Assembly: GCA_038087875.1 (NCBI GenBank) | Contig: JAXLNO010000796.1 | Location: forward strand, 1 to 64,000 | Length of the DNA stretch: 64,000 bases | Reading direction: 5' to 3' | From: Malacoraja senta | Lineage: Eukaryota | Part shown: positions 3,291-64,000 of the stretch, in pieces | Numbering within the stretch: the first letter of the stretch is position 1 | Layout of the letters: each line of letters opens with the position of its first letter | The notes under the pieces: generated by a model | Told to the model about the DNA's origin: nothing | Databases searched by the model: none | The model's input: the letters and a program-made list of their open reading frames with translations, nothing else | Translations under genes and position numbers: made by a program

Positions 3291-3366
3291 CAGGGACTCC
3301 AACGGCAGCAATGATCACGTACAGGATTTTCTGCACACCCAAATATTCATAAAGCTTTTCCCACAT
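3291..3366 (-). CDS. GPR139/GPR142-like GPCR, coding exon 1
   Basis: ATG at 3366-3364 begins MWEKLYEYLGVQKILYVIIAAVGVP plus one G. Donor GTAAGT at 3290-3285. The phase-1 join to exon 2 restores GVP-V-NLVAIVIL (TM1). Confidence 0.88.
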
Positions 3367-5055: not shown

Positions 5056-5387
5056 NNNNNNNNNNNNNNNNNNNNNNNNNNNNNNNNNNNNNNNNNNNNN
5101 NNNNNNNNNNNNNNNNNNNNNNNNNNNNNNNNNNNNNNNNNNNNNNNNNNNNNNNNNNNNNNNNNNNNNNNNNNNNNNNNNNNNNNNNNNNNNNNNNNNN
5201 NNNNNNNNNNNNNNNNNNNNNNNNNNNNNNNNNNNNNNNNNNNNNNNNNNNNNNNNNNNNNNNNNNNNNNNNNNNNNNNNNNNNNNNNNNNNNNNNNNNN
5301 NNNNNNNNNNNNNNNNNNNNNNNNNNNNNNNNNNNNNNNNNNNNNNNNNNNNNNNNNNNNNNNNNNNNNNNNNNNNNNNNNNNNNNN
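5056..5387. other. Assembly gap (N run)
   Basis: Run of N. Confidence 1.
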
Positions 5388-18400: not shown

Positions 18401-20380
18401 GCATTTTCAAAGCAAACCACCTTTTGCATTTTGCAAAGCAAACCACCTTTTGTATGAAGCAAACCACCTTTTGCATTTTCACAGCAAACAACTTTTGCAT
18501 TTTCAAAGCAAAGCACCTTTGGCATTTTCAAAGCAAACCTTTTGTATTTTCAAAGCAAACCTGTTGCATTATCAAAGCAAAACACCATTTGCATTTTCAA
18601 AGCAAACTTCCGTTAGCATTTTTAAAGCAAACCACCTTTTGCATTTTCAACCCAATCCTTTTGCATTTTGAAACCAAACCTTTAGCATTTTCGAACCAAT
18701 CCACCATTTGCATTTTCAAACCAAACCAGCATTTGCATTTTCAAACCAAACCATCATTTGCATTTTCAAACCAAACCACCATTTCCATTTTCAAACCAAA
18801 CCACCATTTGCATTTTCAAACCAAACCATCATTTCCATTTTCAAACCAAACCACCATTTGCATTTTCAAACCAAACCACCATTTGCATTTTCAGACAAAA
18901 CCACCTTTTGCATTTTCAAAGCAAACCATCATTTGCATTTTCAAACCAAACCACCATTTGCATTTTCAAACCAAACCACCGAACCCCCTTTTTCATTTTC
19001 AAATGGAACCACCTTTTGCATTTTCAGGATACTTTTTGCATTTTCGAAGCAAACGTTTTGCATTTTCAAAGCAAATCTTTGCATTTTCAAAGCAAATCTT
19101 TGCATTTTCAAAGCAAACCATTTGCATTTTCAAAGCAAACATTTTGCATTTTCAAAGCAAACCACCTTTTGCATTTTCAGACCAAACCACCTTTTGCATT
19201 TTTAAAGCAAACCACCCTTTGTATTTTCAAAGCAAACCACATTTTGCATTTTCAAAGCATACTACCTTTTGTATTTTCAAAGCAAACCACCATTATCATT
19301 TTCAAAGTAAACCTTTTGTATTTTCAAAGCAAACCTTTTGCATTTTCAAAGCAAAATACCATTTGCATTTTCAAAGCAAACCACCTTTTGCATTTTCAAA
19401 GCAAACCACCATTTGCATTTTCAAACAAAAGTACCATTTGCATTTTCAAACCAAACCACCATTTACATTTTCAAACCAATCCACCATTTGCATTTTCAAA
19501 CCAAACCATCATTTCCATTTTCAAACCAAAGCACTATTTGCATTTTAAAACCGAACCTCCTTTTACATTTTCAAAGCAAACATTTTGCATTTTCAAAGTA
19601 AACCTTTTGCATTTTTAAAGCAAACATTTGCATTTTGAAAAAAAACCATTTGCATTTTCAAAGCAAACATTTTGCATTTTCAAAGCACCTTTTGAATTTT
19701 CAAAGCAAAGCACCTTTTGCATTTTCAAACCAAACCACCTGTTCCACTTTGAAAGCAAACCGCCTATCGCATTTTCAAAGCAAACAACGTTTTGCATTTT
19801 CAAAGCAAACCACCTTTTGCATTTTGCAAAGCAAACCACCTTTTGTATGAAGCAAACCACCTTTTGCATTTTCACAGCAAACAACTTTTGCATTTTCAAA
19901 GCAAAGCACCTCTGGCATTTTCAAAGCAAACCACCATTTGCATTTTCAAAGCAAACCTTTTGCATTATCAAAGCAAAACACCATTTGCATTTTCAAAGCA
20001 AACTACCGTTAGCATTTTTAAAGCAAAGCACCGTTTGCATTTTCAAAGCAAAAATGTTTTCCATTGTCGAAGCAAACCGCCATTTGCCTTTTCGAAGCAA
20101 ACCGCCATTTGCATTTTCGAAGCAAACCATCTTTTGCATTTGCGAAGCAAACCACCTTTTGCATTTTCAAAGCAAACCACCTTTTGCATTTTCAAAGCAA
20201 AACATCTTTCGCATTTTCAAAGCAAACCAACTTTTGCATTTTCAACCCAATCCTTTTGCATTTTCGAACCAATCCACCATTTGCATTTTCAAACCAAACC
20301 ACCATTTCCATTTTCAAACCAAACCACATTTTGCATTTTCAAAGCAAACCCCCTTTAGCATTTTTAAAGCAAACCACAAT
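6438..20380. repeat. Satellite DNA array of about 14 kb; 25-bp monomer with 22-bp and 29-bp variants and higher-order structure
   Basis: Monomers GCATTTTCAAAGCAAACCACCTTTT and GCATTTTCAAACCAAACCACCATTT. Rare landmark variants recur at fixed spacings (830 bp and about 1.4-1.55 kb). The array ends in an N gap. Confidence 0.97.
15604..16665 (-). mobile_element. 5'-truncated CR1/HER1 LINE inserted in the satellite (RT C-terminal half, uninterrupted frame)
   Basis: ORF 15702-16697: GVPQGSVLGPQLF...FADDTK...LVRPHLEYCVQFWSP...FFTQRVVNLWNSLP. The 3' tail is (TATCTATG)n at about 15604-15625. Confidence 0.96.
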
Positions 20381-20753
20381 NNNNNNNNNNNNNNNNNNNN
20401 NNNNNNNNNNNNNNNNNNNNNNNNNNNNNNNNNNNNNNNNNNNNNNNNNNNNNNNNNNNNNNNNNNNNNNNNNNNNNNNNNNNNNNNNNNNNNNNNNNNN
20501 NNNNNNNNNNNNNNNNNNNNNNNNNNNNNNNNNNNNNNNNNNNNNNNNNNNNNNNNNNNNNNNNNNNNNNNNNNNNNNNNNNNNNNNNNNNNNNNNNNNN
20601 NNNNNNNNNNNNNNNNNNNNNNNNNNNNNNNNNNNNNNNNNNNNNNNNNNNNNNNNNNNNNNNNNNNNNNNNNNNNNNNNNNNNNNNNNNNNNNNNNNNN
20701 NNNNNNNNNNNNNNNNNNNNNNNNNNNNNNNNNNNNNNNNNNNNNNNNNNNNN
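20381..20753. other. Assembly gap (N run)
   Basis: Run of N. Confidence 1.
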
Positions 20754-35830: not shown

Positions 35831-36553
35831 TCTATGACTCTTTGTTAGATGAACATAAACATGGCAAATGGAGTTTAAGAATGGAAAATATGTGCTCACA
35901 CACTCTGGTAAGATCAATTAAAAGAAGCTATTATCTAAATGGAGTGAGATTGCAAATGAGTGGAGTACAAGAGATTCAAGTGCTTAAAGTGCAAACAAAA
36001 AGCCAGCAGGTAGATGCAGCACACAACGCAGAATGTGATTAGCATTCAAAGTAGGTTACTATTGTAATTATGGTACATGATGTTGCTAAGGAGATATCAG
36101 GACCACTGTGCACAGCTTGGTCCTCAAATTTAAGAAAGGATATATTAATATTGGATATCAGCTAGAAGAGATTTCTGGAATAAGCAAGTGTTGCCTAACC
36201 ATGAATGGCTGAAATCACTGGTTCTGTGTCCCTTGGAGATGACAAGAAACAGAGTTAACCTTATGAATGTATTAAAGAGGCATGATGTGCTGGTGAATTG
36301 ATGGATAATGCGTGGATATATTCTAAAAGAACAGGGAATTGTGTCTTATGTGGAATAAGCACAGTAAAGGAGTTGAGGCCTCAGTCATATCAGTTGTTAT
36401 CAACATAAATTGCTAGATAGCTCTAATTTGTACAAATGCAGGGCAGTCTATTGAGAATTTCTGTCATGTTTGATAAACTTAATTTAACCCTTTCCATTTA
36501 TTTCAGTTCCTGCATTTTAATCACATCCATGAAATCTTCTACTCAGCGATTGG

Positions 36554-36594
36554 TTAGCAGTGCACGTTCTGCTTTGGTTGAATATTTTGATAAT
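36554..36594 (-). CDS. MHC class I-like gene, probable terminal cytoplasmic exon: (D)YQNIQPKQNVHC*
   Basis: Strong acceptor tttaatttccctcctCAG (CAG at 36597-36595). The phase-1 join to the TM exon is in frame. TAA at 36556-36554, followed by AATAAA at 36502-36497 on the minus strand. Confidence 0.65.
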
Positions 36595-36721
36595 CTGAGG
36601 AGGGAAATTAAATATTAGACAACAAAGAAATGGCATAGCAGAGAACAGAACTCAGAAAGATGCAACGACTTTATTCGCTTTAACTGTTGATTCATCCCAC
36701 ATAACATCTTCCTTCCAGATA

Positions 36722-36965
36722 TAAAGGCACAGCGCCAGACACCTGGGTTTGATCCTGACCATGGGTGATGTCTGTATGGAATTTGTACCTTCTCCCTGTG
36801 ACTGCATAGGTTTTCTCCAGGTGCTCCAGTTTCCTCCCACATTCCAAAGACAGATGTGCAGGTTTGTAGGTTAATTGACTTGTGTCCCTAGCTTATGTGG
36901 GTGATCGTTGGTTGGTGCGGACTCATGTTCAGCACAAACGTTGTTGGACAAAGGACCTGTTCCTC
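36722..36965 (+). mobile_element. HE1-type SINE
   Basis: ggcacagcgccagacacctgggtttgatcctgacc...gtgcaggtttgtaggttaattg...ggacctgttcc. Confidence 0.75.
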
Positions 36966-37511
36966 TATTACAGGGGCATTCCCATTCACCGTAAAATTCA
37001 GCGAACTCAGCACCATTGGGTCACTGGAAATATTCCCTGCCTGACCATCAGATCCCTCCAGATCAGTCGGACAGACACCAGTTAGGCAGCATCTGCCTGC
37101 AAATGATTCATGTCCCTCAAACCCCTGCATCTCCATGCACCCACGAAGGTGCACGCCAGATGCCACCATCCCTGGCAGTGCTTTCCAGGCACACACCACA
37201 TAGTATGTAATAAAAACTTGCCCTTTTTAAAAAACTGCAGCTTCTACGCTGCACTGAATATAATGCAATAATTTAAATGCCATAGTAGGCATTTAGTTAA
37301 TTGGGATAATTTTAGTCAATTGGGAGGTGTGATTGCAAATCTTGTACAATATCATAAACCAAGTAAAATGTGACAAAGTCAAAATGGCCAGGCACAAAGA
37401 ACAGAATAATCATGAACATCAATAACATGTCAATAACTAGACTCTCCTTGTGGCAGCATGCTGTAAGGTTGCAAACTCATTTGCTCCCTTAACTTTTAAC
37501 TTCCACTGACC

Positions 37512-38088
37512 ACTCTTTCATTCAATCAATCATTCAATCAACTTTTATTGTCATCTTGCAAGCAACAGTTGTACAGTGCAAAATGAAAAGATGTTTCCCA
37601 GGGAATACCGGAGCATCGCACATGAAATTTAAAACATTTCACACATAATAACACTAAAAACAATCCAGTCCCTGATGGAACAGTATAAATAGTTAAAAAG
37701 TAGGTAAAACATCAACGTTAAAATACAGTAAAACCAATCATAAACATGTCCGGGGCAGCTGATTTGAGTGGCCAGTGCCAGTTATTGAAGTGGCCAGTGC
37801 CAGTTATTAAAGTGTCCGTGCCAAGCCGCAGAATCAGGTGACTGTGAGTACAGAGTGGCTGTTTAGCAGCCTCACAGCATATGGCAGGAAGCTGTTTAGC
37901 AGTCTTGTGGTCCGGGCTTTGATGCTGCGATATCTCTTGCCTGATGGCAGGAGATCCAGGTGTATGTGGAGGGGGTGCAGTTTGTCCTTAGCAATTCTCT
38001 GAGCTTTTTTCAGACAGCGGCTCTGGAACAGTTCTTGTACCCAGGGTAGGGAGACGCCAATGATCCTCTCTGCTCCCCTCACTACCCT
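37512..38088 (-). mobile_element. Rex1/Babar-type non-LTR retrotransposon 3' end
   Basis: ORF 37834-38082 encodes LLPSGKRYRSIKARTTRLLNSFLPYAVRLLN. The 3' end has AATAAA and a (TGAT/TGAA)n tail. Confidence 0.75.
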
Positions 38089-41000
38089 TTCAATGTTACT
38101 GGTGACTATTTGACTTCAAGACACCGTCTAACTGTTCATAAAGTGTTGATAACACTTTTACACGCCTTAATCGTGAAAAGGATGGAGACAAGAAGGAAAG
38201 GAGGATCCCCAAAGAAGGAACTGGGGAAAGCCACCACCACAGCTGCAGCTTCTGATTCCAGCATCATAGAAGCAATATCGAAAAATGAATGATGAATTGA
38301 ACAATGAGCTGAAAAATGAAATGAAAACAAGATTTGGCAGTTTGGAAGAAATGGTGAAAGGAGTTTCGACCAAATTGAAGGAAGTCCAAGGAAAACTGTC
38401 TTTGTTACAAGATGAACTTCGTGAACAAACGGATCAAATTGATATCTTGCGCACCCTGGGACAGGAGAGAGATTTGAAGATTGAAAAATTGGAACGGAGA
38501 ATGAATGAAAACACTTCAGCAATACAAGTCTAAAAATATGGACTTAGAAAACAGAAGCCGTGGTTTGAATTGACGAATTGTTGGTTTGCCGGAAGGCCAA
38601 GAAGGAGATAACGTTATAAAATATGCTTCTAAAATGATAAAGGAAACATTCAACATTGAGCAGAATGAAAACCTTCCGTTCCTGGATAAGGCACACAGGA
38701 TTGGGAAGAGATCCGGTAATAAACCGAGACACTTGATCATACGGTTTCATTTTTTTCAAATGAAGGAGAATATTCTCCAGGCAGCAAAAAAGTTTGGTGT
38801 GGTTGAATATGAAGGATGTAAGTTTCGATTTGTCCCTGATTATAGTTACGAGCTTTTGGAAATAAGAAAGACTTTTTATAATGTAATGTCTGATTTGTAT
38901 AAGAAAAACTGCGCCCAGCTTTATTATCACCAGCTAGATTGTGTATTCGGCTTTTCAATGGTAACTTTCGATTTTTTAACAGTCCTCAAGACGTCTCCAG
39001 CTTTCTGAAGAGCTACGACGAGGAAGGGGAGTAATTGATAGCTGATTAAGTTATAATTGGAGATTTACTGTTCCTATTTTGACAACATTTTGTTTGGTAA
39101 TGATTAAGAATTTAACTGGACGAGTTGTTTTTCTTTTATATATATTCTTTTAAGAATTTCTTTGTTAATTCGTGTTCCCCTGTCGTTAGACAAACTAAGA
39201 GAATGCAGTTCTTGTTTTTCATATCTTGACCTTGGATAATAATAAGCCGCATTCCATGCCAGTCTGTATTTTTTTCTTCTTCTCTCTTAAAGAATGTGTT
39301 ATGACGTAGTGGTTAAATATTATTCTTTTTATGCTGAGCGCTGTTACTGGGAGAGATGGGATTGGGGAGGGGATTAGGTAGTTTGCTGACTGTCTTTTGG
39401 TCAGTTTGGGGTTCTACAGGGGTGGGAGGGGGTGGGTCGGGGTGGGAGGGGGTGGGAGGGGGGAAGGGGGAGGGGTCTTTTTTTCAAACTACCTGATTCC
39501 AAGTTTAGTGCTAAACAATGGCGATTTAATGCTACTTTGCTTCAAGACTTAAACTTTATTAAGTTTATGAAAGATCAGATTGCTTTTTACTTCTTGACAA
39601 ACTCTAATGAAGAGATATCCTATGGTATAGTTTGGGATGCTTTTAAGGCATATATTCGTGGACAAATTATTTCATACTCCGCGGGATTAAAAAAACAAAC
39701 ACAAAATGAAATACGCACATTGGCTGACGAGATTAAAGAAATTGATTAAAAATATTCAAAAGCTCCTAGTTTAGAGCTCTATAAGAATAGAGTTGAACTT
39801 CAATTGAGATATGATTTGTTATTAGTATCACCGATTGAGAACCAGTTACTTAAAACCAAAAGTTAATTTTATATAAATGGCGAAAAATCTGGTAAATTAC
39901 TTGTTAATCAATTGAAAGCAGTATCGGCCAAGCGTCAGAAGTGAGTAAACGGGCTGGTACAGTAACTGACGAAATTAATAAATCCTTTCAGCAATTTTAT
40001 ACCTCCCTATACCAATCAGATTTTCCTAATGATTCCAATATAATGCATGAGTTTTTACAGAAACTGAACTTACCAAATTTACCATACAATTTACCATCTG
40101 TTGTTAGATGAACCCATCACGGAAGAAGAAATACAGAAAGCAATTTTTTCAATGAATTCTGGTAAAGCTCCCGGTTTAGATGGATTTACAGTAGAATTTT
40201 TAAAGTATTTCTCAAATGTATTGTCTCCATGGCTATGCAAGGTATTTAAAGAAGCCTTTTTAAGGAATAGATTACCACAATCTTTTTATGAAGCTTCTAT
40301 TTCTTTAATTTTAAAAAAAGATAAAGACCCTACTGAAGTGACATCATATAGACCTATATCAATGTTAAGTGTAGATTTTAAAATTCTTTCAAAAATATTA
40401 CCTATGAGATTGGAAAAGATTTTACCGCAAATTATCTCTGAAGATCAGACAGGTTTTATTAAAAATCGTTACTCATTCTTTAATGTTAGGAGATTAATAA
40501 ATATTGTATATACAGCGTCTAATAAAACCCCAGAATGTGTCATCTCACTTGATGCCGAGAAGGCTATTGATAGAGTAGAATGGAATACTTATTCAATATA
40601 CTTGAAAAAGTTAAGATTGGTCCAAAATTTATCTCTTGGATCAAACTGCTATATCTTATACCTCAGGCTTCTGTATTTACTGATAATCAGAGATCCCCTT
40701 TTTCAGGCTCTTTCAAGGTACTAGACAGGGCTGTCCCTTAAGTCCTTTACTATTTGATATTGCTTTGGAAACTTTAGCCACTGCTATTAGGGAATCCCCT
40801 AATATTTTTGGTATTGTCCGCGGGATTAAGACACATAAGCTATCTCTTTATGCAGATGATCTGTTATTATTTATTTCTAACCCTGAGAAATCTATTCCAG
40901 CAATAGTAGCATTACTTAATCAATTCAGTAGTTTTTCTGGTTATAAACTAAATCTTAGTAAGGGTGAGCTTTCCCATTAAATAATTTTGTTTCGAGTTAT

Positions 41001-41982
41001 GGACAGTTTCCATTTAGATTGACTACCGAAAGTTTTACTTATTTAGGTATTAAGATCACCAAGAAACACAAGGATTTATTTAAAGCTAATTTTATTCCTT
41101 TAATTGACCATATTAAACATCAGTTCACTAAATGGTTACCAATGTCCTTATCCTTAATTGGCCGAATCAATGCTATTAAAATGTTCATTTTACCTAAATT
41201 TCTGTATTTATTCAGACGATACCAATTTTTATTGCCAAATCTTTCTTTGATATTATAGACTCTAAAATTTCTTCATATATATGGCAGAATAAAAATCCCA
41301 GACTAGGTAAAAAATACCTACAGAAATCCAAAAAAGTTGGTGGTTTGGCATTGCCGAACCTTAAACTCTACTATTGGGCAGTCAATGTTCGTTATTTAAC
41401 ATTTTGGACAAAAGATTTAGAAGATACCCAATGCCCTGGATGGATAAACCTAGAATGTGATTCCTTACAAGGGCTATAATTGGCTTCTATTCTAGGGACC
41501 TCGTTACCTTTTACAATTACGAGATTGAATAAATATATGACGAACCCAATAATAAGACATACGTTCCGAATACGGTTTCAATTTCGTACGTTTTTTGGAC
41601 TATCTGATTTTATCCAAATTTCTCTTCCAACCATCTAGTACTGATTAAGTTTTTTTGTTATGGAAGAGGAAGGGATTAGTAGCTTTTCGTGATTTGTTTT
41701 TGGAGGGTTGTTTTATGTCTTTCGAACAACTCTCCAATAAATATAACTTACCTAATTCACACTTTTTTAGATATTTACAAATTAGACAAAAGGAACTACC
41801 CCTTTTTCCGCTACCACATCAACCCGAAATTTTGGATTTTTTTTTACAGTTGAACCCTTATCAGAAAGGATTAATAACAACTATTCATGAGTTGATTTTA
41901 AAATTACAAATTTGATAAAATTAAGAATGACTGGGAAAGAGAACTCCAAATGTCTTTATCTATAGAGAAATGGGAGAGGATC

Positions 41983-42229
41983 TGCAACGACCAGGTTCAG
42001 GAACAGCTACTTCCCCACAGCCATCAGGCTATTAAACCTGGCTCGGACATAACACTGAACTTTACTAGCCAATACTGTTATTTGCACTTTATCAGTATAT
42101 TGACCATTGTGTATATATTTATAGAATGCCTTGTAGTAAATGCCTACTATGTTCTGTTGTGCTCAAGCAAAGCAAGAATGTCATTGTCCTACCAGGGACA
42201 CATGACAATAAACTCACTTGACTTGACTT
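41983..42229 (+). mobile_element. Rex1/Babar-type 3' fragment inserted in L1 ORF2, 5-bp TSD GGATC
   Basis: Encodes TTRFRNSYFPTAIRLLN, with a (GACTT)n tail. GGATC occurs at 41978-41982 and 42230-42234. Removing the insert restores WERILQLVN. Confidence 0.8.
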
Positions 42230-42852
42230 GGATCCTTCAATTAGTTAATACCTCTTCAATGTGTGCAAGACACGCTCTGATACAATTCAAGGTGGTTCAC
42301 AGAGCTCATATGTCAAAAGATAAGTTAGCTCGTTTTTATGGTCATATAAATCCTACCTGTGACAGATGTAACTCTGAAGTGGCATCACTGACCCATATGT
42401 TTTGGTCCTGCCCCCTTTTGGAAAAATATTGGAAATAAATTTTTGATACTATTTCGGTAGTCTTAGGTATAGATTTACAACCTCATCCTATTACTGCAAT
42501 TTTTGGGTTACCAATGTTAGATTCTATTCATTTGTCCCACTCCGCCCATCGGTTGATTGCTTTTACCACATTAATTGCCAGAAGATTTATTTTCTTTAAA
42601 TGGAAAGATTCCAACCCTCCGACCACACTCCAGTGGTATTCTGAAATGATATCATGTTTAAATTTAGAAAAAATCAGAAGTGACATTGTTGAACCCTTGG
42701 TTAAATTTGATAAAGACTTGGGGAATATTTATTGAACACTTTCATACAACATAAATTGATCGCTCTTTAACCATTATAAAAATTATTTTACTTTCATAGG
42801 GTGGAACGGACTTGACGACAAACAGACTTAAATTGTTGAATTTCTCAGTTCA

Positions 42853-42989
42853 NNNNNNNNNNNNNNNNNNNNNNNNNNNNNNNNNNNNNNNNNNNNNNNN
42901 NNNNNNNNNNNNNNNNNNNNNNNNNNNNNNNNNNNNNNNNNNNNNNNNNNNNNNNNNNNNNNNNNNNNNNNNNNNNNNNNNNNNNNNNN
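42853..42989. other. Assembly gap (N run)
   Basis: Run of N. Confidence 1.
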
Positions 42990-43224
42990 TTTTTTTTACA
43001 TTTATGTTTCCTTTTAAAGATTTAACTATATTTACATAGGTCTATATTCATGTGTATTTTGACACTGGTCTCATATTAGGTTATACCTGTTATTAATGTA
43101 ATCCTGATCCCTATGTATCAATACCATTGTTATATTTATCATTATTCTTTTTGCTCTGTTTTTTATGTTTTATTTTTGTTTTTGTTTTTTGGAAAAAAAA
43201 CAATAAAAAGATTTTAAAAGAAAG

Positions 43225-43760
43225 GTACTGAATGAAAAAGTTGGGATGTTCTGCTACAGTTGTACAAGATGTTGGTGAGGTCACATTTGGAGTATTGTGT
43301 TAAGTTTTGGTCACTCCACTATCAGAAGGATGTCATTAACAGGGCCTGCGATTCAGGGAGAGGATGACAATGCTTGGACTTTAGTCCTTGGCACGCAAGA
43401 GGCTGAGGGGTGATCTTATAGAAGTTTATAAAATCAAGGAGCATAGATAGATTGAATGCACAGAATCTTTCAACCAGCCTTATGTAATCAAGAACCAGAG
43501 GACTTAGGTTTAAGGTGAGAAGGAAACGAGTTACTCGGAACCAGAGGAAGTGGAAATATGGAAGAACATTCCAGGGGAAGGAGTTGAGGCAGGTATTAAA
43601 ACACATTTAGAACACACTTGGACAGGTACATACTGTAGATAGGAAAGGTTCAGTGAGATATAGGTCAATTGCAGGAAAATTGTAGTTTAAATATGGCATC
43701 TTGGTTGGCATGGCCAAGTTGAGGCAAAGGGCCCATTTCCATGCCGTATGACTCTATGGC
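43225..43760 (+). mobile_element. Degraded CR1 3' fragment
   Basis: gttggtgaggtcacatttggagtattgtgt...ggacttaggtttaaggtgagaagg...gggcccatttccatgccgtatgactctatg. Confidence 0.7.
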
Positions 43761-44475
43761 TCCGTGGGCTTGAAAAGCCAATTCTTTTCCGTTTCCCTGC
43801 TAAATGATAGTTAATCACCCTCACTAATAGTGACCACAATGGCAGACCCATGACCATGACTGGCTTACAGTGATAATAAGCTAACCATTGCCTCAGTTCA
43901 AATATGCATGTCGTTGATGTTCAATGACTAAATTGTTGCTGCATTCTTAGTTTTGGCAAGGTTCTGATCTGGGTGCTGGAGCTGTTAGACATCTTGATAC
44001 CATGAAAGCAGAATCTCAATTTCAGGAAATATACTTGCTGAATGGTGTCTCAGACCAGCAATGCCAGGGAACATTGTATTTTGAAGAGGAAATATTACTC
44101 AACCAAGGCCAAGTGCTCGAGAAAGCAGCACGTCTGTTATTTCAATGAAAACTCTGCTCTTCATCCATCTTGTCATTTTGATCACCCAGTTTAGTTTATA
44201 ATATTGTATAACATTTGCAATCAATTCTCACAGTTTATGACATTTACAGCTGGCGTGAAGATGCATCAGTCAATACCTTCTGTCTTCCAATTTAGTTTAT
44301 TTAATTGAAAGATAGAAACATTAAAAAATAGGTGCAGGAATAGGCTATTCGGCCCTTTGAGCCATACATGGCTGATCATCCAAAATTAATACTCCGATCT
44401 AGCTTTTTCCCCATATCCCTTCACTCCCTTAGCCCTAAGAGCTAAATCTAACTCTCTCTTGAAAACAGTGATACA

Positions 44476-44760
44476 GTGTGTAAACAGGCCATTTGTGCCA
44501 CCAAATCCATACTAACCAGCAATCACCCATTCATAATAGATTTCCCATCCACCCCTACACTATCAGGGTGTCTTAACAAGGATGATTACCTGCACACCTG
44601 CTCATCTTTGGGATATGGGAGGAAACCAGAGCTCCCTGAGGAAGCCCACATAGTCACAAGAGAATGTGCAAACTCCACGTAGACAGTACCCGAGGTCCAG
44701 ATTGAACCTGGGTCTCTGGCGTTGTGAGGCAGCAGTTCTACCAGCTGCACTACCATGCTG
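44476..44760 (-). mobile_element. HE1-type SINE, degraded
   Basis: The reverse complement contains cagctggtagaactgctgcctcacaacgccagagacccaggttcaatc. Confidence 0.7.
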
Positions 44761-45084
44761 CATTACGTACAAACTCTAAATCCTACACTGACTTTCCCTT
44801 CCACTTGTTATATTCAACACAATAACTCCGTTACACAGGAGGAAAGTGAACTGCAATTCATCACCAGAATATATCTTACAAGTGTGATCACAGGCAAGAA
44901 ACCAGTGATATAGATAATAATACACTAAAACCCTGATCATCCAGCTCTCTTGGGATTTGGGAAATGGTAGATTTTAAGGACTGCTGCATGTTACTCCAAA
45001 CATACTTTAATTCAACTAATTTAAGCACTTATTGAGCAGGTCAGTGGTTGAGGTGCATCTGTACACTACTATCAGACTTAAGCG

Positions 45085-45477
45085 TAAAAAAAAAAAAACT
45101 GAGGTCAGGTAAAGGGTGATGATAGCTGGAAAGTTGGTATGTCCCATTTGCGTAATGCTCATAAAAACTATTTGTTTTTCTCTTTCTCCTCTTTCTCTTT
45201 CTCCTTCTTTTCTAGGGTCTATTTCTTAACTCTTTTTCTATTGTTTTTAATTTTGTTCTTATAGGGTCTTTGTTTTGTCTTGTTGTCACATTTTCTACAC
45301 TTTCACTTTTTCCTTCACTTTCTTCTTTCTTTCAATCTTATCCTTTCCTTTTACTAGTGTAAAAAATAAACGGAGTACATTAATTGTAAGAAGATATAAG
45401 TGACGAGTACTAATGTATGTAGTTGTAATGTAATGTACTTCTAATAAATAAAAAAAAATTTAAAAAAAGAAAAAAAA
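45085..45477 (+). mobile_element. Poly(A)-tailed retro-insertion (L1-like 3' UTR only) with an 11-bp TSD
   Basis: AGACTTAAGCG at 45074-45084 and 45478-45488. The insert has a pyrimidine-rich body, AATAAA and an A-rich tail. Confidence 0.7.
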
Positions 45478-45532
45478 AGACTTAAGCGGAGGAATACCCA
45501 TTGTAATTTGCCTGAAGAGTCTCGAACCAGAT

Positions 45533-45890
45533 TAATAATAATAATAATAATGGATTATATTTATATAGCGCCTTTCTAATACTCAAGGCGCTTTACATCG
45601 CATTATTCATTCACTCCTCAGTCACACTCGGTGGTGAGCTACTTCTGTAGCCACAGCTGCCCTGGGGCAGACTGACGGAAGCGTGGCTGCTAATTTGCGC
45701 CTACAGCCCCTCCGACCACCACCAATCACTCACACACATTCACACACATCCACACACATTCACACGCAGGCAAAGGTGGGTGAAGTGTCTTGCCCAAGGA
45801 CACAACGACAGTATGCACTCCAAGCGGGATTCGAACCGGCTACCTTCCGGTTGCCAGCCGAACACTTAGCCCATTGCGCCATCTGTCGCC
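45533..45890 (-). mobile_element. tRNA-derived CORE-type SINE with an L2-like tail, resembling teleost AFC-type SINEs
   Basis: Reverse complement: ggcgacagatggcgcaatggg (A box)...ggttcgaatccc (B box)...tgtgtccttgggcaagacacttcaccc (CORE)...aaaggcgctatataaat...(TTA)n. Confidence 0.75.
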
Positions 45891-46409
45891 TATCCATGGT
45901 CTCCAGGGATGTTGCCTGACCTGCTGAGTTACTATAGCACTGTCCCTCACAGTCTTTCCCAATCTTATAAATCAAAAATAGTCAGCATCTTTCTACATCA
46001 AAAAGAGTCATGGAAATATGCAGCATACAAATATGGCCTTTGTCCCACTGACCTGCACCAACCATTCATGTACACTAATCCTATATTTGTCCCACATTCT
46101 CATCAGCTCTCCCCACATTGTATCATGCACAATCTAGGGGACAACTAACCTACCAAACAATGTTTTGGGGATGTGGGAGGAAACCAGAGCACCTGGGGAA
46201 ACCCACATGGTCACAGGAACAACATGCAAACCCTACAGATACAACAGCCAATGTCGGTATTTAATTCAGGTCTCTGGCTCTGTGATGTCCTGTTTCACAT
46301 TGTAGTCCACCTGTCATGTTGTTGCTCATTCATTCGGCTTTCCACCTTGAACCATTTCTCCCACTACTCACATTCCCACTTAATTTGGAGTTTTCCAGCA
46401 ACAGCGGCC

Positions 46410-46712
46410 TTGGTGGCAGCTACTGTGTGCAGCGGTAGAGTTGCTGCCTTACAGTGCTTGCAGCACCGGAGACCCGGGTTCGATCCCGACTACTGATGCT
46501 GTCTGTACAAAGTTTGTACGTTCTCCCCGTGACCGCGTGTGTTTTCTCCGAGATCTAAGGTTTCCTCCCACACTCCAAAGACGTACAGGTATGTAGGTTA
46601 ATTGGCTTGGTGTGGTGTATAGGATAGTGTTAATGTGCGGGGATCGCTGGTCAGCGCAGACTCGGTGGGCCTAAGGACCTGTTTCGTCACTGTATCTCTA
46701 AATTAAACTAAA
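46410..46712 (+). mobile_element. HE1-type SINE
   Basis: gcagcggtagagttgctgccttacag...gagacccgggttcgatcccgactac...tgtatctctaaattaaactaaac. Confidence 0.85.
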
Positions 46713-46792
46713 CAAAACTAGTAAATGTTAAACTGCAACCAATCTGCCTCATAGCTGACTTGGATCATGAACAGTGCGAGCCCCCAACAGAG

Positions 46793-47105
46793 CAGCACAG
46801 TGTCACAACTCATAGAGCTGCTGCCTCACAGCGACACAGACCCGGGTTCAATTTTGACCTTGAGTGCCATCTATGTGGAGTTTGCACGTTCTCCATGTAA
46901 CCGAATTGGATCCCTCCAGGGGCTCCGGTTTCCTCACACATGCTAAGATGTGTCAGTTTATAGTTTAATTGGCCACTGTAAATTGCCCCTAGTGGGTGGG
47001 TGACTGGATGAGAAGATGCAATGAGATAGAATTCATGAGAACAGGTGGTTGGTGGTTGGCATGGACACGGTGGGCCGAAAGGACTGCCCCCATGCTGTAC
47101 CTTTT
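46793..47105 (+). mobile_element. HE1-type SINE
   Basis: atagagctgctgcctcacagcgacacagacccgggttcaa...gtgggccgaaaggactgccccca. Confidence 0.75.
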
Positions 47106-47354
47106 AATGACTCATTGATATTTCTTGGATTTGGTGCAGTGAATCCATAATGTATAACATGTTTTCACACTGAATTCACAATTTTTAAATATCTGATTAT
47201 CAGAAACATTTAACAACAGCACAAAGGCTAGTTGACAGTGGTGACTGTCGAGGCATTTCAGGTGTAGCTGCTGCCTTATCCTACTTGAGATCGATCATTT
47301 CTTCAAGCCCAATACCTTTACTAGCAACAGTGCATCACAATTTTTCCATCTTAC

Positions 47355-47462
47355 CTCTCCTCTTTTTTCTCCACCAAACAATTACTGCCAAGACAATAGC
47401 CAGCAATATCAGCACACACACGGCAATAAGGCCTATGTGCCTGTCTTTCTTCCTATTTCCTT
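47355..47462 (-). CDS. MHC class I-like gene, connecting peptide/TM exon
   Basis: Acceptor cttatttttCAG and donor GTAAGA. The 108-bp phase 1-1 exon encodes (E)GNRKKDRHIGLIAVCVLILLAIVLAVIVWWRKKRR, a hydrophobic helix with a basic stop-transfer sequence. Confidence 0.9.
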
Positions 47463-56824: not shown

Positions 56825-56979
56825 CTGAAATAAAAATAAAAATCATTATTTGATTAATTGTTATGACTGGGTAATTTCTGAACACCAGGGTACAAGTTAT
56901 TTATATATGTCACAAGTAGCAAGGGTCACAGCATAGATCCCTGTGACAACTCTACTTGTCACTGAACTACAGCCTGAAT

Positions 56980-57440
56980 ATTTGGCCTTCCGTACAACTG
57001 TAGAGACCATATTATTGTATGGGTGTGATGCATGGACTCTCACTCCAGCACTGTCCTAGTCTCTTGATGGTACCTACACCCGAATGCTCGGAAAAGTTTA
57101 AAATGTCAGATGGAGGGACCACATCACCAACGCCCAGCTCTATGGGGAGAATCCACCTCTGACCGAGAAGATCACGTTGAGAAGGATGAGGCTCGCAGGT
57201 CACTGGCTCCGTTACCCAGAAATGCCAGCGAACAAGGTTGTGCTGTGGGAACCCACCCATGGAAGACTTGACCCAGGATGGCCAATCAAGATGATGGTGA
57301 AGACGTTGATGGAAGACGCATGTGTAGAGATAAAAAAGGCGCTTGCCAGTTGCATGAAGGAGAGATGTGTGGTGCATCCGTCACCGTGCCCGTCGGAAAC
57401 CAGCACGGCACTAATGTTTTCAATGATTATTATTATCATC
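56980..57440 (+). mobile_element. RTE-clade LINE 3' end
   Basis: Encodes FRTTVETILLYGCDAWTLT...YTRML...RRMRLAGHWLR...WEPTHGR, with an (ATT)n tail. Confidence 0.75.
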
Positions 57441-57561
57441 CACTACACCCCTCTGTCCTGAGGATTTATCCACATTTCTCTTCAAGTGATCCAACATCTC
57501 CTTCTTGCTTAACTTCAAAGTGTCCCTGCATGTTAGCATTCTCCACATTGATTCTCCATGT

Positions 57562-58388
57562 GTAAGAAAGAACTGCAGATGCTGCAGATGTTAAAATCGA
57601 AGAGAGACACAAAATGCTGGCGTAACTCAGCGGGTCAGGCAGCTTCCCTGGAGAGATGGAATGGGCATCGTTTTGGGTCGAGACCCTTCTTCATACTGAT
57701 GTCAGGGGAGGGACAAAGATAGAATGTCGGCGGAGACAGTAAGACTGGTGGGAGAATTGGGAAGGGGGAGGGGATGGAGAGAGAAATCAAGGGCTATCGA
57801 AAGTTATAGAAGTCAATGTTCATACCGCTGGAGTATAGACTACCCAAGCGAAATATGAGGTGCTGTTCCTCCAATTTGTGCTGGGCCACACTCTGACAAT
57901 GGAGGAGGCCCAGAACAGAAAGGTCAGATTGGGAATGGGAGGGGGAGTTGAAGTGCTGAGCCACCGGGAGATCGGGTAGGGTAAGACGGACTGAGGGGAA
58001 GTGTTCAGCAAAACGATCGCCGAGCCTGCGCTTGGTCTCACTGATGTAGAGAAGTTGACAACTGAAACAGTGGATACAGTAGATGAGGTTGGAAGAGGTG
58101 CAAGTGAACTTCTGCCTCACCTGGAAAGACTTTTGGTCCTTGGACGGAGTCGAGGGGGGACGTAAAGGGACAGGTGTTGCATCTCCGGCGGTTGCAGGGG
58201 AAAGTAGCCGGGGAGCGGGTGGTTTGGGTGTGAAGGGACAAGTTGACCAGGGAGTTTCGGAGGGAACGGTCTCTGCGGAAAGCAGAAAGGGGTGGAGATG
58301 GGAAGATGTGATCAGTAGTGGGATCCCGTTGGAGGTGGCAAAAATGATGGAGGATTTTATGATGTACGTACTATTAATAGTCCTTACT
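57562..58388 (-). mobile_element. Penelope-like element 3' portion (GIY-YIG endonuclease plus 3' UTR with a decayed hammerhead), inserted in a CR1 fragment with an 11-bp TSD
   Basis: FTCTSSNLIYCIHC...LYISETKRRLGDRFAEH...HFN...EQHLIFRLGSL..GMN. TSD ATTCTCCATGT at 57551-57561 and 58389-58399. The flanks translate as CR1 ORF2. Confidence 0.9.
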
Positions 58389-58519
58389 ATTCTCCATGTC
58401 TTCCTTGGTGAAACCAAACCTTGCCTATATCCACAAACTCCAAGCACATATTCCCTTCTATATCCTTAAGCAATCCACCTTTTGCTGCAATGGTTGCCTC
58501 GCCAACAGTATGTCTGTCC

Positions 58520-59170
58520 CTTCCTTCTTTGTGTCCATTTTGTATGTGTTAAATGTATATTCTTTCGTGTTCTTTTGCTTGTTTTGGGGGGGGGGGGGTT
58601 GGGGGAGTTGTGGGAAACTTTTCCTAATCTCTTACCTCGACGTTGATGCGATATTTTTTGTATCGTATCTCCGTCCACAATGCGGCCTAACATTGAGGAA
58701 TGGCGGCCTTTGCTAGAGATCGACCGGGAGATCCATCGCAGGAGCCTGTGGACTTACCATCATGGAGCTCGTGATCCCTGTCGGGGATCGACTTTAGGGC
58801 TCCAACTGTGAGAGCCTGCAAGACTTTAACATCGCGGAGCCCGCGGTCCCAGGTCGAGACCGACATCCGGGACCTCCAAGCCGCAGGAGTTTCGACCGCT
58901 CCGACCGCTCCGATGTGGGAGTTTCGATTCCCCAATGGGGGTTTCGACCACCGACTGCAGATTGTTTGACTGCCCCGACCGCAGGAGATAAAGAGGAAGG
59001 AGATTAGACTTTATTGCCTTCTATCACAGTGAGGAACGTGCGGGCTCCTCTGTTGTGGATGTTTATGTTAACTTTTATGTTATTGTGTGTCTTGTTGCTT
59101 TTTTTAGTATGGTGTATGGTAGTCTGCATTTCAATGTACCTTAATTGGTATATGTGACAATAAACTAACC
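58520..59170 (+). mobile_element. Unclassified GC-rich interspersed repeat with a LINE-like tail; a related copy lies at 61770-62240
   Basis: Shared motifs gggacctccaagccgcag, ggagga..att.gact..ttgccttc.a.cacagtga and a tgtgacaataaa/tgtgatgaataaa tail in both copies. Confidence 0.55.
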
Positions 59171-61190
59171 ATGAAACCTTGAAAAAGATGTGGGATTTTC
59201 TGTAATCCGACTCACTAAAGCCACTTTGTGGCCTTTATTAGCCCCTTTAATTTTAAGCTTTAGAGCAGTTGTTCTTAATCTTTTTGGCCCCACGACCCCA
59301 TCGGGCATTCTTGATCAGTACCATGACCTCTGAAACAAAATTTGAAAAAAAACAGCCCGATTTATTAAAACATGTCTGCCATTGCTCAGTCAATGGGATG
59401 GCTGAAATTGCTTCGCAGTCATCACGCAATCAAAACGAGCACGAATGCTCGACAGGCAGCATCTCATGTCAGTGTCGATCACAAGCCTATTGCGTACCTT
59501 CGTTTTCAGAGTTACCATAGTGGAGAATCCACCCTCACAGTGAGAGGTTGAGGGGGACTGGACCAATAGGGTCAGGGCCCTCTTTGAAAGAGCAGGACAG
59601 TCCTTCACTTTCAGCCAAAACGTGGCGAGCTCTTGTTCCATGAAGTCACTCTTGAGTTGCGCATCTTCACAAATTCGGTAAAATTCAACCTTCGCAGTCA
59701 CGTCAGTATCACTGATGGCACCGCCTTCAACGGAAAAGGGTCGGAAGATCCACTGATCACGAGAGCGGTCGTCCAGTCTGGGGAAGTAACATTCGATGGC
59801 TTCACTAATTGCCAGAAGGTGGGTTGAGATCTCCTCATGGAAGTGGCATTCAGCATCAGGCGTAGCATGGAGGAGAGTCGTCATCTCAGGGAAGATAGTT
59901 GAGTCACCGTCCTGGACTCTTCTCTGGTAAAGATTCCTCCTGAATGCTGCCACTTTGCCATTGGGAGGTTTCCTTGAAGTGACAGGTTCAAGGAATTCAC
60001 CTCGGTGAAGAAGTCAGCCAAGTAAGCAACCTTCATCACGAACAGTTCAACCTGCATCTTTTCATGAAGCGGATTCTCCTTCTCAGTACCCCTTCTCTCC
60101 AAGAACAGCGCTATTTCCTCTCAACGTTGAATCACATGATTGAGAAATTTACCAGTGCGAAAGCCAGCGCACTTCTGTGTGGAATAACAGAATAGTGAAA
60201 TCGGCGCCCATTTCTTCACACATCGCTTTGAAGATTCTTGAGTTTGTTGCACTCTCTCGGATGTGGTTCACAATCTTCACCACATCTGAAAGCACTTCTC
60301 GAAGACCAAGAGGGAGAGTCTTCATCACTAAAGCATGGTGATGTATCATGCAGTGGGTGAAGGAGACATGGGGAGCGACATCCTTCACGAAGGCTTGGAA
60401 ACCGGATCTGCAGCTGACCATGGAAGGTGCCCCAACTGTACACATCCCGACAAGGCATTCCCACCAAGCTCATGTTTGATGAGGAAGGCTTCCAGCATTC
60501 TGAACACATCTTCTCCCCGAGTGGTAGTAGCCAATGGGTCCGAGAACAGGTACTCCTCCACATGGCTTCTCCATTGAGGTAATGAACGTAGACTAGCAGT
60601 TGGGAACATGAGGCAACATCTGTTGACTCTCCCAGTTGCAGTGAATACACTGGACTGCTCGTCACAGCCCTCACTACTTGCAGCAGAATATCATTACTCA
60701 TATCCGAGATTCAACTTTTGACTGTGTCATTCAAAAGGGAAATCTGCCTGAACTTGTTTGACTGCTCTTCCCCCAGCACCAACTTCGCTGTTTCGAGAAG
60801 GCGTGGCTTGATAAGCTCTTCACCGATGCTGTGAGGTTTCTTAGTCTGTGCGATTCGATAAGCAATCCGGTATGAAGCCTCCAACGCTGCTTCATTTTGA
60901 TGAGCACAGTTACCCATTGAATAGATGCGGGATCCCTTGAGTACGGCTTCTTTTCGTTTGAAATAGTCCCCGCTCTTCCCCGCCAGGTTACTGTGACAAG
61001 ACTCCAAATGGATCTTCAGTTTGCTGGGCTTCATGCTCTCGTGACTCAAAACCTTGGCACAGAGAACACATCGCGGCTTGACCACGGATTTTGAACAATG
61101 CTTGTGAAGCCCAACTTGAGAAATGTTTCACTATACGTGCGCGTCTTGGAAGACATGGTTCACAACACACACTGTTTGTGCGTGTATACG

Positions 61191-63424
61191 CAGGGCCTGA
61201 GAGGAATTTTATCAGTGGGTACAACGTTTATTTTGGGCCTCATTCCCTTCTCCATTAGTCATCCTGTTTTTATCCACTATGCTACAGTTTTATGCCATGA
61301 GCTGGAGACTGCACGGCAAAAAGGGGTATGGAAGATGAGAGAGGGGTGGGATGGGGCGCTCTGTTGATTTTCTGCATTTGAGGCCTTATGTCCCTATACA
61401 CCCTCCATGATAAATATAAATAAGTATAAATAAAATAAAAGGATCAGAAAGCTCATTGGTTTTCCTTCACTCTATTGATGCTGCCTCACCCGTTGAGTTT
61501 CTCCAGCATTTAATCTAGCTTTGTTTTGAACATCTTTGTTTATGCTACAATACAGATAAGGAGAAAGAATTCACATTGAAACATCTTTTTATGTTTCAAT
61601 GCAGTTCATATCATCAAAAGACATAATTATTTGTAAAAAGTAAAAGATTTATTATATAAATTTATTTTATATAAAGAGGTTTCCTGGCCTTTTTTTGTGA
61701 AAAATGTCAAATCACAGCATAAAAATGTATTGTTCTGGCAATGTATGATTCAATACTATTGATTCAATACGTTGACACCGTGGAGCTGTGGTCTGCGGAG
61801 CTTCTAACCGCGGGCGTGGCGTGGACTTACCATCCGGATCCTGGGATCCCTCGCCGGGGATCACCAGAGACGAGCTCGAACCGCTGGCTCACATCCTGAA
61901 GCTGCGGTCTCCAGCAGGAAAGTGCCGAGTCGGGACCTCCAAGCCGCAGAGTGTGTTTGTCCGTCCCAACGTCGGAGTTTGGATCATCCCGACGAGAGGG
62001 CCTTGTACATCGGGCCGTCCCTGGATGCGACTACGGAGGGGTTATGGCTCCGAACACGGGTGAACAAAGGAGGAAGACTGGCTGAAACTTGTTGCCTTCT
62101 ACCACAGTGAAAAATGCTGTAGTGGATGTTTGTGTTCAATTTTATTGTGTATTGTGTGTTCTTTTTACGTGTATCACTGCTGGCAAATTCACTTCACTGC
62201 ACCTTCGGGTGTATGTGATGAATAAAACTGACTTTAACTTTGAATACTTAGCCTGGCCAAATCCACAAGACGATCATGAGACATTGTCGACCTTAATCAG
62301 CTTGAGTTTGCTAAATGACCTCTCTGCAGAAGCTACTGTTGCTGGAATTGTTAATAGTATTCTGAAGCTAACACAAACATTTGGAAACAGGTTACCAAGT
62401 CAATAGTCTGTTAACAAGTTCAACAGATCTAATGGTTTTAACTTCATTTATAAAATTCACCCTCCCACTAACACACACATACACTCAGACACACACTCAC
62501 TCACCTACTCACATACACCCACACACATACACACACCCTCACCCACGCACTCAGCCACACACATCCACACACATACACACACCCTCACCCACTCACTCAC
62601 ACACACCCATCCACACACTGACCCAAACCCAGGCCCGGACCACTGAAACAGACGCGGCTGCCGACTCTCACCACCACCCCGGGCGAGGCCACCGCAGCCA
62701 CTGTCGCCGACCTTCACTGTCTTCAGAAAGCCAATGATGCTGCTGCCCATATCTCTACTCCAGCTCCCCACGGGCCTCCACCAGCGACTCTGCCGACCCT
62801 CGCCTCTCCACCGGCCACCAGCGGGCCAGACCCGTCACCTCACCAGAGTTCCCAGCATAGCACCAGGCCCACAACCTAAACCATGCAGACAGCACATGGT
62901 CTGATTGCTGGCTCCTAGTGCTCCCCCCCTCCCTCCTACAGGGAAGACCCATCAATAGTGATGACTCTGCTGGGTCCTAGTGCTCTCCCCCCTCCTTCTC
63001 CTACAGGGAAGATCCATCAGTAGTGATGACTCTGCTGGGTCCTAGTGCTCTCCCCCCTCCTTGTCCTACAGGGAAGATCCATCAGTAGTGATGACTCTGT
63101 TGGGTCCTAGTGCTCTCCCTCCTCCTACAGGGAAGACCCATGAGTAGTGATGGTTCTTCCCCTTCCCCCTCTTTTAATCAGGTTACCCCGACCACACACC
63201 CGCCAGTTAAAATTCCCTGCTATATTATGGATCACAATTTCTACGAATTACGATATATAAAACTCTGAAGGCACAAAATGTGAATGCTAGTCTTCACAAA
63301 ATATATGCAAACATTTTCTGAGATTTCACGAAATTCACACCCCCCCTCCTTCAGCTCCCGGGCTCCTATTGGACTCTGGGCCCGGGTACGATGTACCCCC
63401 TGCACCCCCCTCTCATAGGCCCTG
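61191..63424 (-). mobile_element. Second hAT element, internally deleted, nested in the first
   Basis: TIRs CAGGGCCTGAGAGG / CAGGGCCTATGAGAGG and perfect TSD TGTATACG (61183-61190 and 63425-63432). A hAT dimerisation-domain remnant LFPNVCVSFRILLTIPATVASAERSFSKLKLIK lies at about 62245-62400. Confidence 0.9.
62930..63160. repeat. Tandem repeat of about 58-61 bp, four copies
   Basis: CTACAGGGAAGATCCATCAGTAGTGATGACTCTGCTGGGTCCTAGTGCTCTCCCCCCTCC is repeated. Confidence 0.85.
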
Positions 63425-63599
63425 TGTATACGTACGCGCATTCGTGAACAAAATACTGTGTGTGGTATGTACCTTTGTTAGGTTCCTCAAAATAGGCTCA
63501 ACAAATTGATGTTCTTTACAACCCCTTCATGACCCCCGGAAAAACCCCAAGTGACCCCCATGGGGGTCATGACCCCCAGGTTAAGAACCACTGCTTTGG

Positions 63600-63795
63600 A
63601 GATACATTGCTGAAACAGGCCCTTCAGCCCATACTAGGGACAATTTACAATTATACCAAGCCAATTTACCTACATCTCAGAGAAAAGTCACACAGGTTAC
63701 GGGGAGAACATGCAAACTCCGTACAGTCACCACTCGTAGTCAGGTTCAAACCCGGGTCTCAGGTGCTGCAAGGCAGCAACTCGTGTAAGGCCACG
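63600..63795 (-). mobile_element. HE1-type SINE, internally deleted
   Basis: The reverse complement contains gagttgctgccttgcagcacctgagacccgggtttgaacctgactacga...gtaaattgtccctagt. Confidence 0.7.
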
Positions 63796-64000
63796 ATCTC
63801 TTGGCTTTGCTTATAATTATTATCATGTTTTATCTTCTATTGTCTTCTTTTTGCTTATTGCATATAAACAAATGTAAAGCTGCACATAAGGTTGGATCTT
63901 TTCGAGGCCCGAGCTGCCCCATCTATTACCACAAAAGTGCTTCCTATATTTAGAGAAACATAGATATAATAAGGCTCACCCCTCATGGGCATTGAAGGCT

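Follow-up and report, generated by a model that had tools for sequence, protein, structure and literature searches.

Two reports describe the class I-like lineages UFA and UGA as linked to the major histocompatibility complex (MHC) and CD1-like, with a crystal structure and mass spectrometry indicating lipid binding (PMC10751288; PMC12562908), and UGA as a single- or low-copy gene (PMC12562908). For CD1, a recycling motif in a short cytoplasmic tail is one of the criteria, and the very short tails of CD1B, CD1C and CD1D carry YQNI, YQDI and YQGV, respectively, close to their ends (PMC5002281). Localisation to endosomes is directed by these motifs; delivery to lysosomes depends on AP-3 for CD1b and mouse CD1d, but not for human CD1d, although the latter too has a YxxPhi motif (PMC2194227). 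Here we describe a gene on the minus strand of contig JAXLNO010000796.1 of the skate Malacoraja senta (assembly GCA_038087875.1). Coordinates refer to the window, by which we mean the whole stretch of DNA analysed (positions 1-64,000 of this contig). The four 3'-most exons of the gene lie in the window; they encode the alpha-2 domain, the alpha-3 domain, the transmembrane (TM) segment and the cytoplasmic tail with the 3' untranslated region (3'UTR). Judged by its sequence, the gene is a skate member of the UGA lineage, and its tail contains the tyrosine motif YQNI. We consider it probable, at about 75%, that UGA is a nonclassical class I molecule of the beta-2-microglobulin type with a conserved tyrosine sorting tail, sampling lipids in endosomes as CD1 does.

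Assignment of the gene to UGA

The initial annotation proposed that this cartilaginous fish has a class I molecule resembling CD1, mentioned UFA and held that the lineage could not be assigned. The alpha-2 exon matches the Pfam family MHC_I (4e-13), and the alpha-3 exon matches C1-set (5e-20). The best match of alpha-2 in the PDB is chain A of 9CH4 (E 1e-34, ~60% identity), followed by MR1, ZAG and classical class I at 1e-11. Entry 9CH4, released 2026-03-18, is titled 'Crystal structure of shark nonclassical MHC CLASS I, UGA'; a family member from the zebra shark (Stegostoma) is ~88% identical to it over 268 residues. The orthologue from the skate Amblyraja matches 9CH4 at 9e-118 versus 4e-48 for MR1, the next-best solved relative, with which identity is only ~25-27%. 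We know of no tail motif shared by MR1 and UGA.

The family was gathered by phmmer with alpha-2 and then by a word-indexed search, and tails were read from the cluster members; a profile search with the family alignment (A2) brought in one further cluster only. A quick maximum-likelihood tree was built from 38 rows, with unnamed class I representatives as outgroups and without UFA as a named sequence. The 23 family members form one clade (Shimodaira-Hasegawa-like approximate likelihood ratio test, SH-aLRT, 99), within which batoids (99) and skates (100) are grouped and the topology follows the species tree. The window row, 93% identical to the Amblyraja orthologue, stands among the skates. The tree places the gene within the skate UGA clade; from this nesting among skate orthologues and the best match to 9CH4, the gene is UGA and not UFA. 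CD1 was also rejected as a relative by sequence, as it lies outside the best 60 PDB sequence matches, with MR1, classical class I and ZAG ranking higher. The kinship of CD1 to UGA is that of the MHC-I fold only, and the term CD1-like therefore stands in the functional sense, UGA being lipid-binding according to the literature, but not as a statement on sequence. An AlphaFold model of the Amblyraja orthologue (15-row alignment) was poor (predicted local distance difference test 64, predicted template modelling score 0.46) and was used only for retrieving PDB titles; chicken CD1-1 appears at the 36th place of the structure ranking.

The gene is a new skate copy in a described lineage, for which public genome annotations already include orthologues with this tail and the PDB contains an ectodomain structure. 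Domain order, exon structure and a short basic anchor followed by a Y-x-x-[I/V] tail are shared by all full-length models of UGA; the crystallised 9CH4 construct ends at the end of alpha-3, and the tail is absent from the structure. Unlike UGA as described, which is single- or low-copy, the lineage is many-copy in skates, and batoids add a nine-residue, Cys-ended extension to the tail. On chromosome CM130181.1 of Rhinoraja longicauda, a single 90% cluster is represented by at least 10 different proteins, complete or partial, nearly all with DYQTI, and Pristis CM019888.1 carries three diverged UGA paralogues, the models of two of which are without the motif. The low copy number thus does not extend to batoids; this is a property of skates and rays and gives no ground to exclude the gene from UGA. 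No MHC marker gene was found in the 64-kb window, where the downstream neighbour is a gene for a GPR139-like G-protein coupled receptor (GPCR).

Splicing and integrity of the tail exon

The four exons, read directly from the DNA (Table 1), are all open, are joined in phase 1 at every junction, and have canonical splice sites and the immunoglobulin (Ig) and alpha-2 cysteines. The TM exon encodes EGNRKKDRH, IGLIAVCVLILLAIVLAVIVWW and RKKRR, and the last exon reads (g)at tat caa aat att caa cca aag cag aac gtg cac tgc taa, giving the joined C-terminus IGLIAVCVLILLAIVLAVIVWW-RKKRR-D-YQNI-QPKQNVHC, followed by the stop, with ..VIVWW directly before the basic anchor. To what extent such a motif could arise by chance was gauged from the 17 kb downstream of the TM donor. 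Among 1119 AG sites, six opened comparable pseudo-exons, defined as phase 1, AG-bounded, with a fair pyrimidine tract and with YxxPhi within the first 15 residues. A YxxPhi motif behind an AG is thus, by itself, not beyond chance. Because the motif alone is not statistically remarkable, the case for the tail exon rests on homology, which singles out 36594-36554.

The homology is provided by RNA and by genomic DNA. The 334-aa protein of the Leucoraja type is encoded without interruption in three Logan RNA-seq contigs. One of them, a spliced contig of 3455 nt from the sister skate Leucoraja (SRR11241640_23228), aligns with all four exons, and reads ..AGGAGAG/ATTATCAAAATATTC.. at the junction of the TM exon and the last exon, with borders exactly as in the window. 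The segment sizes of 276, 267, 108 and 41 nt and the AG/GT borders are identical in the loci of Rhinoraja (L001) and Amblyraja (L004), and the acceptor, the coding part and the first ~90 nt of the 3'UTR of the last exon align with those of the sawfish Pristis. Orthologous ends are annotated in 20 species. These observations refute the alternative that the 41 nt are no exon but an open frame that happens to follow a fortuitous AG, for which the six pseudo-exons of the scan might have spoken; the segment is a true exon. The joined window protein is collinear with the 334-aa orthologues, with no residue missing, and no additional coding exon between the TM exon and the last exon occurs in any orthologue, whether mRNA or protein.

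With regard to the initial annotation, its join of 47355 to 36594, including phase and acceptor, agrees with the DNA and with the RNA junction in the Leucoraja contig, and the small exons that it allowed for in the 10.8-kb intron are absent from orthologous mRNA and proteins. Its '41-bp exon' is correct as a 41-nt coding segment, but the Leucoraja contig reveals this segment as just the coding start of a longer last exon. The 3'UTR of that contig is collinear with the window to ~30486, with window-specific insertions between the blocks, and the sister-skate mRNA extends at least 2.3 kb beyond the stop. The nearby AATAAA, which had been cited in support of the exon, is present in the window but is species-specific, the position being occupied by ATATAT in Rhinoraja, Pristis and the Leucoraja mRNA. 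Since the orthologues have ATATAT and the mRNA continues, a conserved poly(A) signal at this proximal site was ruled out.

Table 1. Features of the window, with corresponding positions in the Leucoraja RNA-seq contig and nucleotide identity where given
Feature	Window position	Strand	Description	Leucoraja contig
Alpha-2 exon	56824-56549	-	276 nt, phase 1; tttcag/ ... /gtgagt	417-690, aligned to 56822-56549 (94%)
Alpha-3 exon	50407-50141	-	267 nt; Ig C1-set, both Cys present	689-957, aligned to 50409-50141 (95%)
Read-through of alpha-3 donor	50140-50085	-	GKNIKYSFIDNHYLLLFPF, then stop	
TM exon	47462-47355	-	108 nt; connecting peptide, TM helix, basic anchor; cag/ acceptor, 3' end ..agg aga g/gtaag	957-1065, aligned to 47463-47355 (95%)
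Last exon, coding part	36594-36554	-	41 nt; (D)YQNIQPKQNVHC and TAA stop (36556-36554); acceptor ..ccctcctcag/; orthologous segments L001 34023-34063, L004 80708-80748	1064-1347, aligned to 36596-36314 (with 3'UTR start)
YxxPhi motif	36592-36581	-	tat caa aat att, Y Q N I; Tyr the 7th cytosolic residue	
Batoid extension	36580-36557	-	Cys-terminated	
3'UTR start	36553-36314	-	AATAAA at 36502-36497	
3'UTR block	36315-35579	-		1555-2310
3'UTR block	34942-34597	-		2303-2656
3'UTR block	31249-30486	-		2661-3455
L1-type LINE	~37431-43222	+	degenerate; antisense to the gene	
Transposase_22	38574-39005	+	L1 domain (Pfam)	
RVT_1	40068-40977	+	L1 domain (Pfam)	
zf-RVT	41902-42435	+	L1 domain (Pfam), ORF2	
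L1 3' end	~43200-43222	+	A-rich, with AATAAA	
Assembly gap	42853-42989		inside the L1	
Open frame in alpha-1/alpha-2 intron	57797-58465	-	stop-free, 223 aa	
Open frames in alpha-1/alpha-2 intron	59393-61127	-	stop-free, several of 100-207 aa	
Match to region upstream of Rhinoraja alpha-1	59183-58487		L001; 78% identity	
GPCR gene	1-954	-	open frame of 318 aa, running off the window start	
Separate array	4277-5055		40/75-nt units	
Assembly gap	5056-5387		bounds the satellite	
Tandem satellite	6475-20377	+	13.9 kb, 25-nt unit	
Insertion in satellite	15705-16718	-	bears reverse transcriptase	
Assembly gap	20381-20753		bounds the satellite	

The last intron measures 10.8 kb in the window versus 4.4 kb in Rhinoraja. 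It holds a degenerate L1-type long interspersed nuclear element (LINE), the domains of which were recognised in plus-strand open reading frames (ORFs), and an assembly gap lies inside this element, between the ORF2 zf-RVT domain and the A-rich 3' end, with both sides belonging to one element in one orientation. The L1 block accounts for the difference in intron length; it has no counterpart in the orthologous intron (Rhinoraja L001, 32795 to 32842; Amblyraja L004, 79554 to 79587), and its flanks are collinear in both species at 82-88%. Because the gap-bearing block is absent from the orthologous introns and the flanks are collinear, the coding sequence does not cross the gap; because the joined protein is collinear with the 334-aa orthologues, the gap hides no coding exon. 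The gap is thus intronic and leaves the reading frame unaffected.

In 56900-64000, neither the stop-free frames nor a tblastn search with three orthologues (word size 2) revealed the exons for alpha-1 and the leader. One could argue from this that the window copy is a pseudogene or a truncated duplicate, in which the tail exon is conserved only through the youth of the copy; the multicopy state of the lineage in skates, with at least 10 Rhinoraja paralogues on one chromosome, and the large transposable element (TE) insertions in the introns would fit such a history. We regard it as unlikely, since the four exons are open with their splice sites and cysteines in place, the ratio of nonsynonymous to synonymous substitutions (dN/dS) against three skates is 0.42-0.55, and identity to the sister mRNA is 94-95% in the coding exons, compared with 84-91% for introns and UTR in skate comparisons. 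The alpha-1/alpha-2 intron of Amblyraja is 11.3 kb long, and alpha-1 is therefore expected beyond window coordinate 64000. A weak, TE-like match in the window to the region upstream of Rhinoraja alpha-1 was considered and rejected as evidence of an alpha-1 deletion. The large stop-free frames of the same intron have the look of transposon remnants, and a Pfam search of the minus-strand ORFs at 57797-61127 gave no match.

Read-through of the alpha-3 donor would end the protein in GKNIKYSFIDNHYLLLFPF. The same ending closes an annotated Leucoraja model (311 aa) and, in a diverged form, a Rhinoraja model (298 aa); conservation of the read-through stretch is not above the intron background. Isoforms of Scyliorhinus and Cetorhinus omit the TM exon, with alpha-3 spliced straight to the exon encoding DYNxV. 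Soluble isoforms, made by alpha-3 read-through or by TM skipping, are possible.

Conservation and probable function of the tail motif

A Y-x-x-[I/V] tail, 5-8 residues past the membrane anchor, was found in three other skates, five other batoids and 12 sharks. In these 20 elasmobranch species Y is invariant, Phi is I or V, and the x positions vary (QN, QT, EN, ES, NV, NT, NA, NI, SV and SF), the exceptions being YSLT in Rhincodon and the models from Pristiophorus. Skates have DYQNI or DYQTI, the tails being RKKRR-DYQNIPPNQNVPC in Amblyraja radiata, RKNRR-DYQNIQPNQNVPC in Leucoraja erinacea isoform X6 and RKKR[KR]-DYQTI[QP]PN[QR]N[MR]RC in the Rhinoraja longicauda paralogues, of which there are at least 10. 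The sawfish Pristis has AYENIRANQNLRC, with the motif AYENI, while stingrays and mantas have DYESI or DYENI (DYESIRAHRRVNC in Hemitrygon and Hypanus; DYENI[PR]AHRNVNC in Mobula). Shark proteins end at the motif: GYNVI in Stegostoma, DYNTV or DYNIV in Scyliorhinus, DYNVV in Cetorhinus, DYNIV in Carcharodon and Heptranchias, EYNAV in Mustelus, AYNAV in Heterodontus, and DYSVV or DYSFV in Chiloscyllium and Hemiscyllium. The control comprised 22 MHC-I-like representatives from outside the family, chosen for a C-terminal TM segment that could be recognised and a tail of 4-70 residues; YxxPhi occurs nowhere in their tails. The window YQNI fits the YxxPhi consensus near the membrane. A fixed Y and I/V around free middle residues has the signature of a constrained YxxPhi, and a tyrosine-based endocytic or endosomal signal in the UGA tail is well supported by this pattern.

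The nine residues that follow the motif in batoids, but not in sharks, always terminate in Cys (..QNVHC, ..QNVPC, ..QNRRC, ..QNLRC, ..RRVNC and ..RNVNC). Lipidation or a disulfide are guesses for the role of this residue.

The window tail, RKKRR-D-YQNI-QPKQNVHC, bears the recycling motif that counts among the CD1 criteria, and CD1b, CD1c and CD1d likewise have a basic stop-transfer, then YxxPhi near the C-terminus of a very short tail, below an ectodomain reported to bind lipid. The initial annotation pointed to a membrane-proximal YxxPhi with the same four residues as human CD1b, and YQNI is indeed identical (PMC5002281). Its designation as CD1b-type has to be withdrawn, as the x residues vary among orthologues, only Y and I/V being fixed, and YQNI is not kept even among skates; the match is coincidental. 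Nor can the AP-3-dependent lysosomal routing that it proposed be deduced from YxxPhi alone, human CD1d being the counterexample (PMC2194227). This counterexample and the freedom of the x positions preclude taking a CD1b-type route to lysosomes as established.

In the function that we favour for UGA, the tail motif would be recognised by clathrin adaptors through their mu subunits, with AP-2 at the cell surface and perhaps AP-3 or AP-1 on endosomes. UGA would be internalised and would recycle by way of endosomes or lysosomes, exchanging its lipid ligands there, as do CD1b, CD1c and CD1d. Which compartment is reached, early or late endosome or lysosome, is not fixed by the sequence. Typical lysosomal signals lie near the membrane, are C-terminal and have Gly or an acidic residue adjoining the Tyr; Bonifacino and Traub, in 2003, are said to have given GYQTI of LAMP-1 and GYEVM of CD63 as such signals. 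As in the LAMP-1 type, the UGA Tyr stands 6-9 residues from the membrane and the shark motif is at the extreme C-terminus, and DYQTI of Rhinoraja differs from LAMP-1 only at Y-1. This position is Gly in LAMP-1 and mostly Asp in UGA (Gly only in Stegostoma and Rhincodon), and in batoids the extension runs past the motif. By analogy, the lysosome-like layout may serve as a lead; it is not a test.

A narrower function, in which the motif is an AP-2 endocytosis and recycling signal acting through early or sorting endosomes, in the style of CD1c and human CD1d and not by CD1b-like AP-3 delivery to lysosomes, is a possibility that we consider less likely than not. It draws on the contrast of human CD1d with CD1b and mouse CD1d, according to which YxxPhi does not predict the use of AP-3 (PMC2194227), and on the lack of constraint on the x residues, by which the YQNI match to CD1b is not conserved. 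On the other hand, the family keeps the layout that goes with lysosomal delivery, in which the motif is close to the membrane and at or near the C-terminus, and position Y-1 or Y+1 is occupied by Gly or an acidic residue.

The tyrosine might instead be a phosphotyrosine docking site, of the Grb2-type pYxN kind or resembling an immunoreceptor tyrosine-based inhibitory or switch motif (ITIM/ITSM), engaged in reverse signalling and not in sorting. YQNI and YENI fit pYxN, and a link between the tail of CD1d and retrograde signalling has been made (PMC11481681). However, N at Y+2 is not kept (YQTI and YESI in batoids; YNVI, YNTV and YSVV in sharks), Y-2 is basic and not I, V, L, S or T as in ITIM/ITSM, and what is conserved is exactly Y and a bulky aliphatic residue at Y+3, which makes a docking site very improbable.

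Several points weigh against UGA as an endosome-sampling molecule with a conserved sorting tail, or against its representation by this gene. The motif is degenerate in the whale shark (Rhincodon typus; P0188, P0192), with GYSLT in one isoform and GRQVFL in another, the sole clear loss of Phi among well-formed models, and it is missing from three Pristiophorus UniRef models, which look mis-predicted. By sequence, the family is nearer to MR1 and classical class I than to CD1. Our literature search turned up no data on the trafficking of a UGA protein or on its binding to adaptors. The RNA support comes from a sister species and not from Malacoraja senta, and some Gnomon isoforms have other 3' ends, including Leucoraja fusions to the downstream GPCR. 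Finally, alpha-1 and the leader lie beyond the window, and intactness can be claimed for the four exons only. Taken as a whole, the initial reading of a CD1-like, endosome-sampling class I molecule was largely right in kind, and overstated in calling the tail CD1b-type and lysosomal and in its nearby poly(A) signal; the altered groove to which it also referred finds no support in a window without alpha-1.

Neighbouring features and implications

The open frame at the window start encodes a rhodopsin-type GPCR (7tm_1, 6e-22), the Leucoraja relative of which is annotated as 'probable G-protein coupled receptor 139'. Gnomon isoforms X1-X5 of Leucoraja LOC129716032 splice UGA exons from the TM-exon donor into the GPCR, and since these isoforms join the two genes, UGA and the GPCR are same-strand neighbours in both skates. 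Between the GPCR and the UGA gene lies a tandem satellite of ~572 copies with 78% matches and a strong C-over-G skew; it is interrupted by an insertion, is bounded by assembly gaps, and is accompanied by a separate array.

With the TM exon, the 10.8-kb intron and the tail exon, the 3' part of a skate UGA copy is now modelled correctly. The split between sharks and rays dates back of the order of 300 million years. We tentatively suggest, as a possibility that we rate below even, that the last ancestor shared by sharks and rays already had a lipid-binding class I-like ectodomain firmly combined with a short, endosome-targeting YxxPhi tail, that the combination has been retained ever since, that skates expanded the gene with all copies keeping the tail, and that batoids added the Cys-terminated extension. 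If this is true, the combination would reflect either an ancient design shared with CD1 or convergence on the same trafficking solution, UGA being no sequence relative of CD1. Provided that the tail was not analysed in the primary work on UGA and UFA, the point would not have been reported before and could be tested directly. The putative endocytic tyrosine motif is a lineage-wide, constrained feature of UGA, and supports the view that sharks and rays sample endosomal lipids with a class I-like molecule, as mammals do with CD1.

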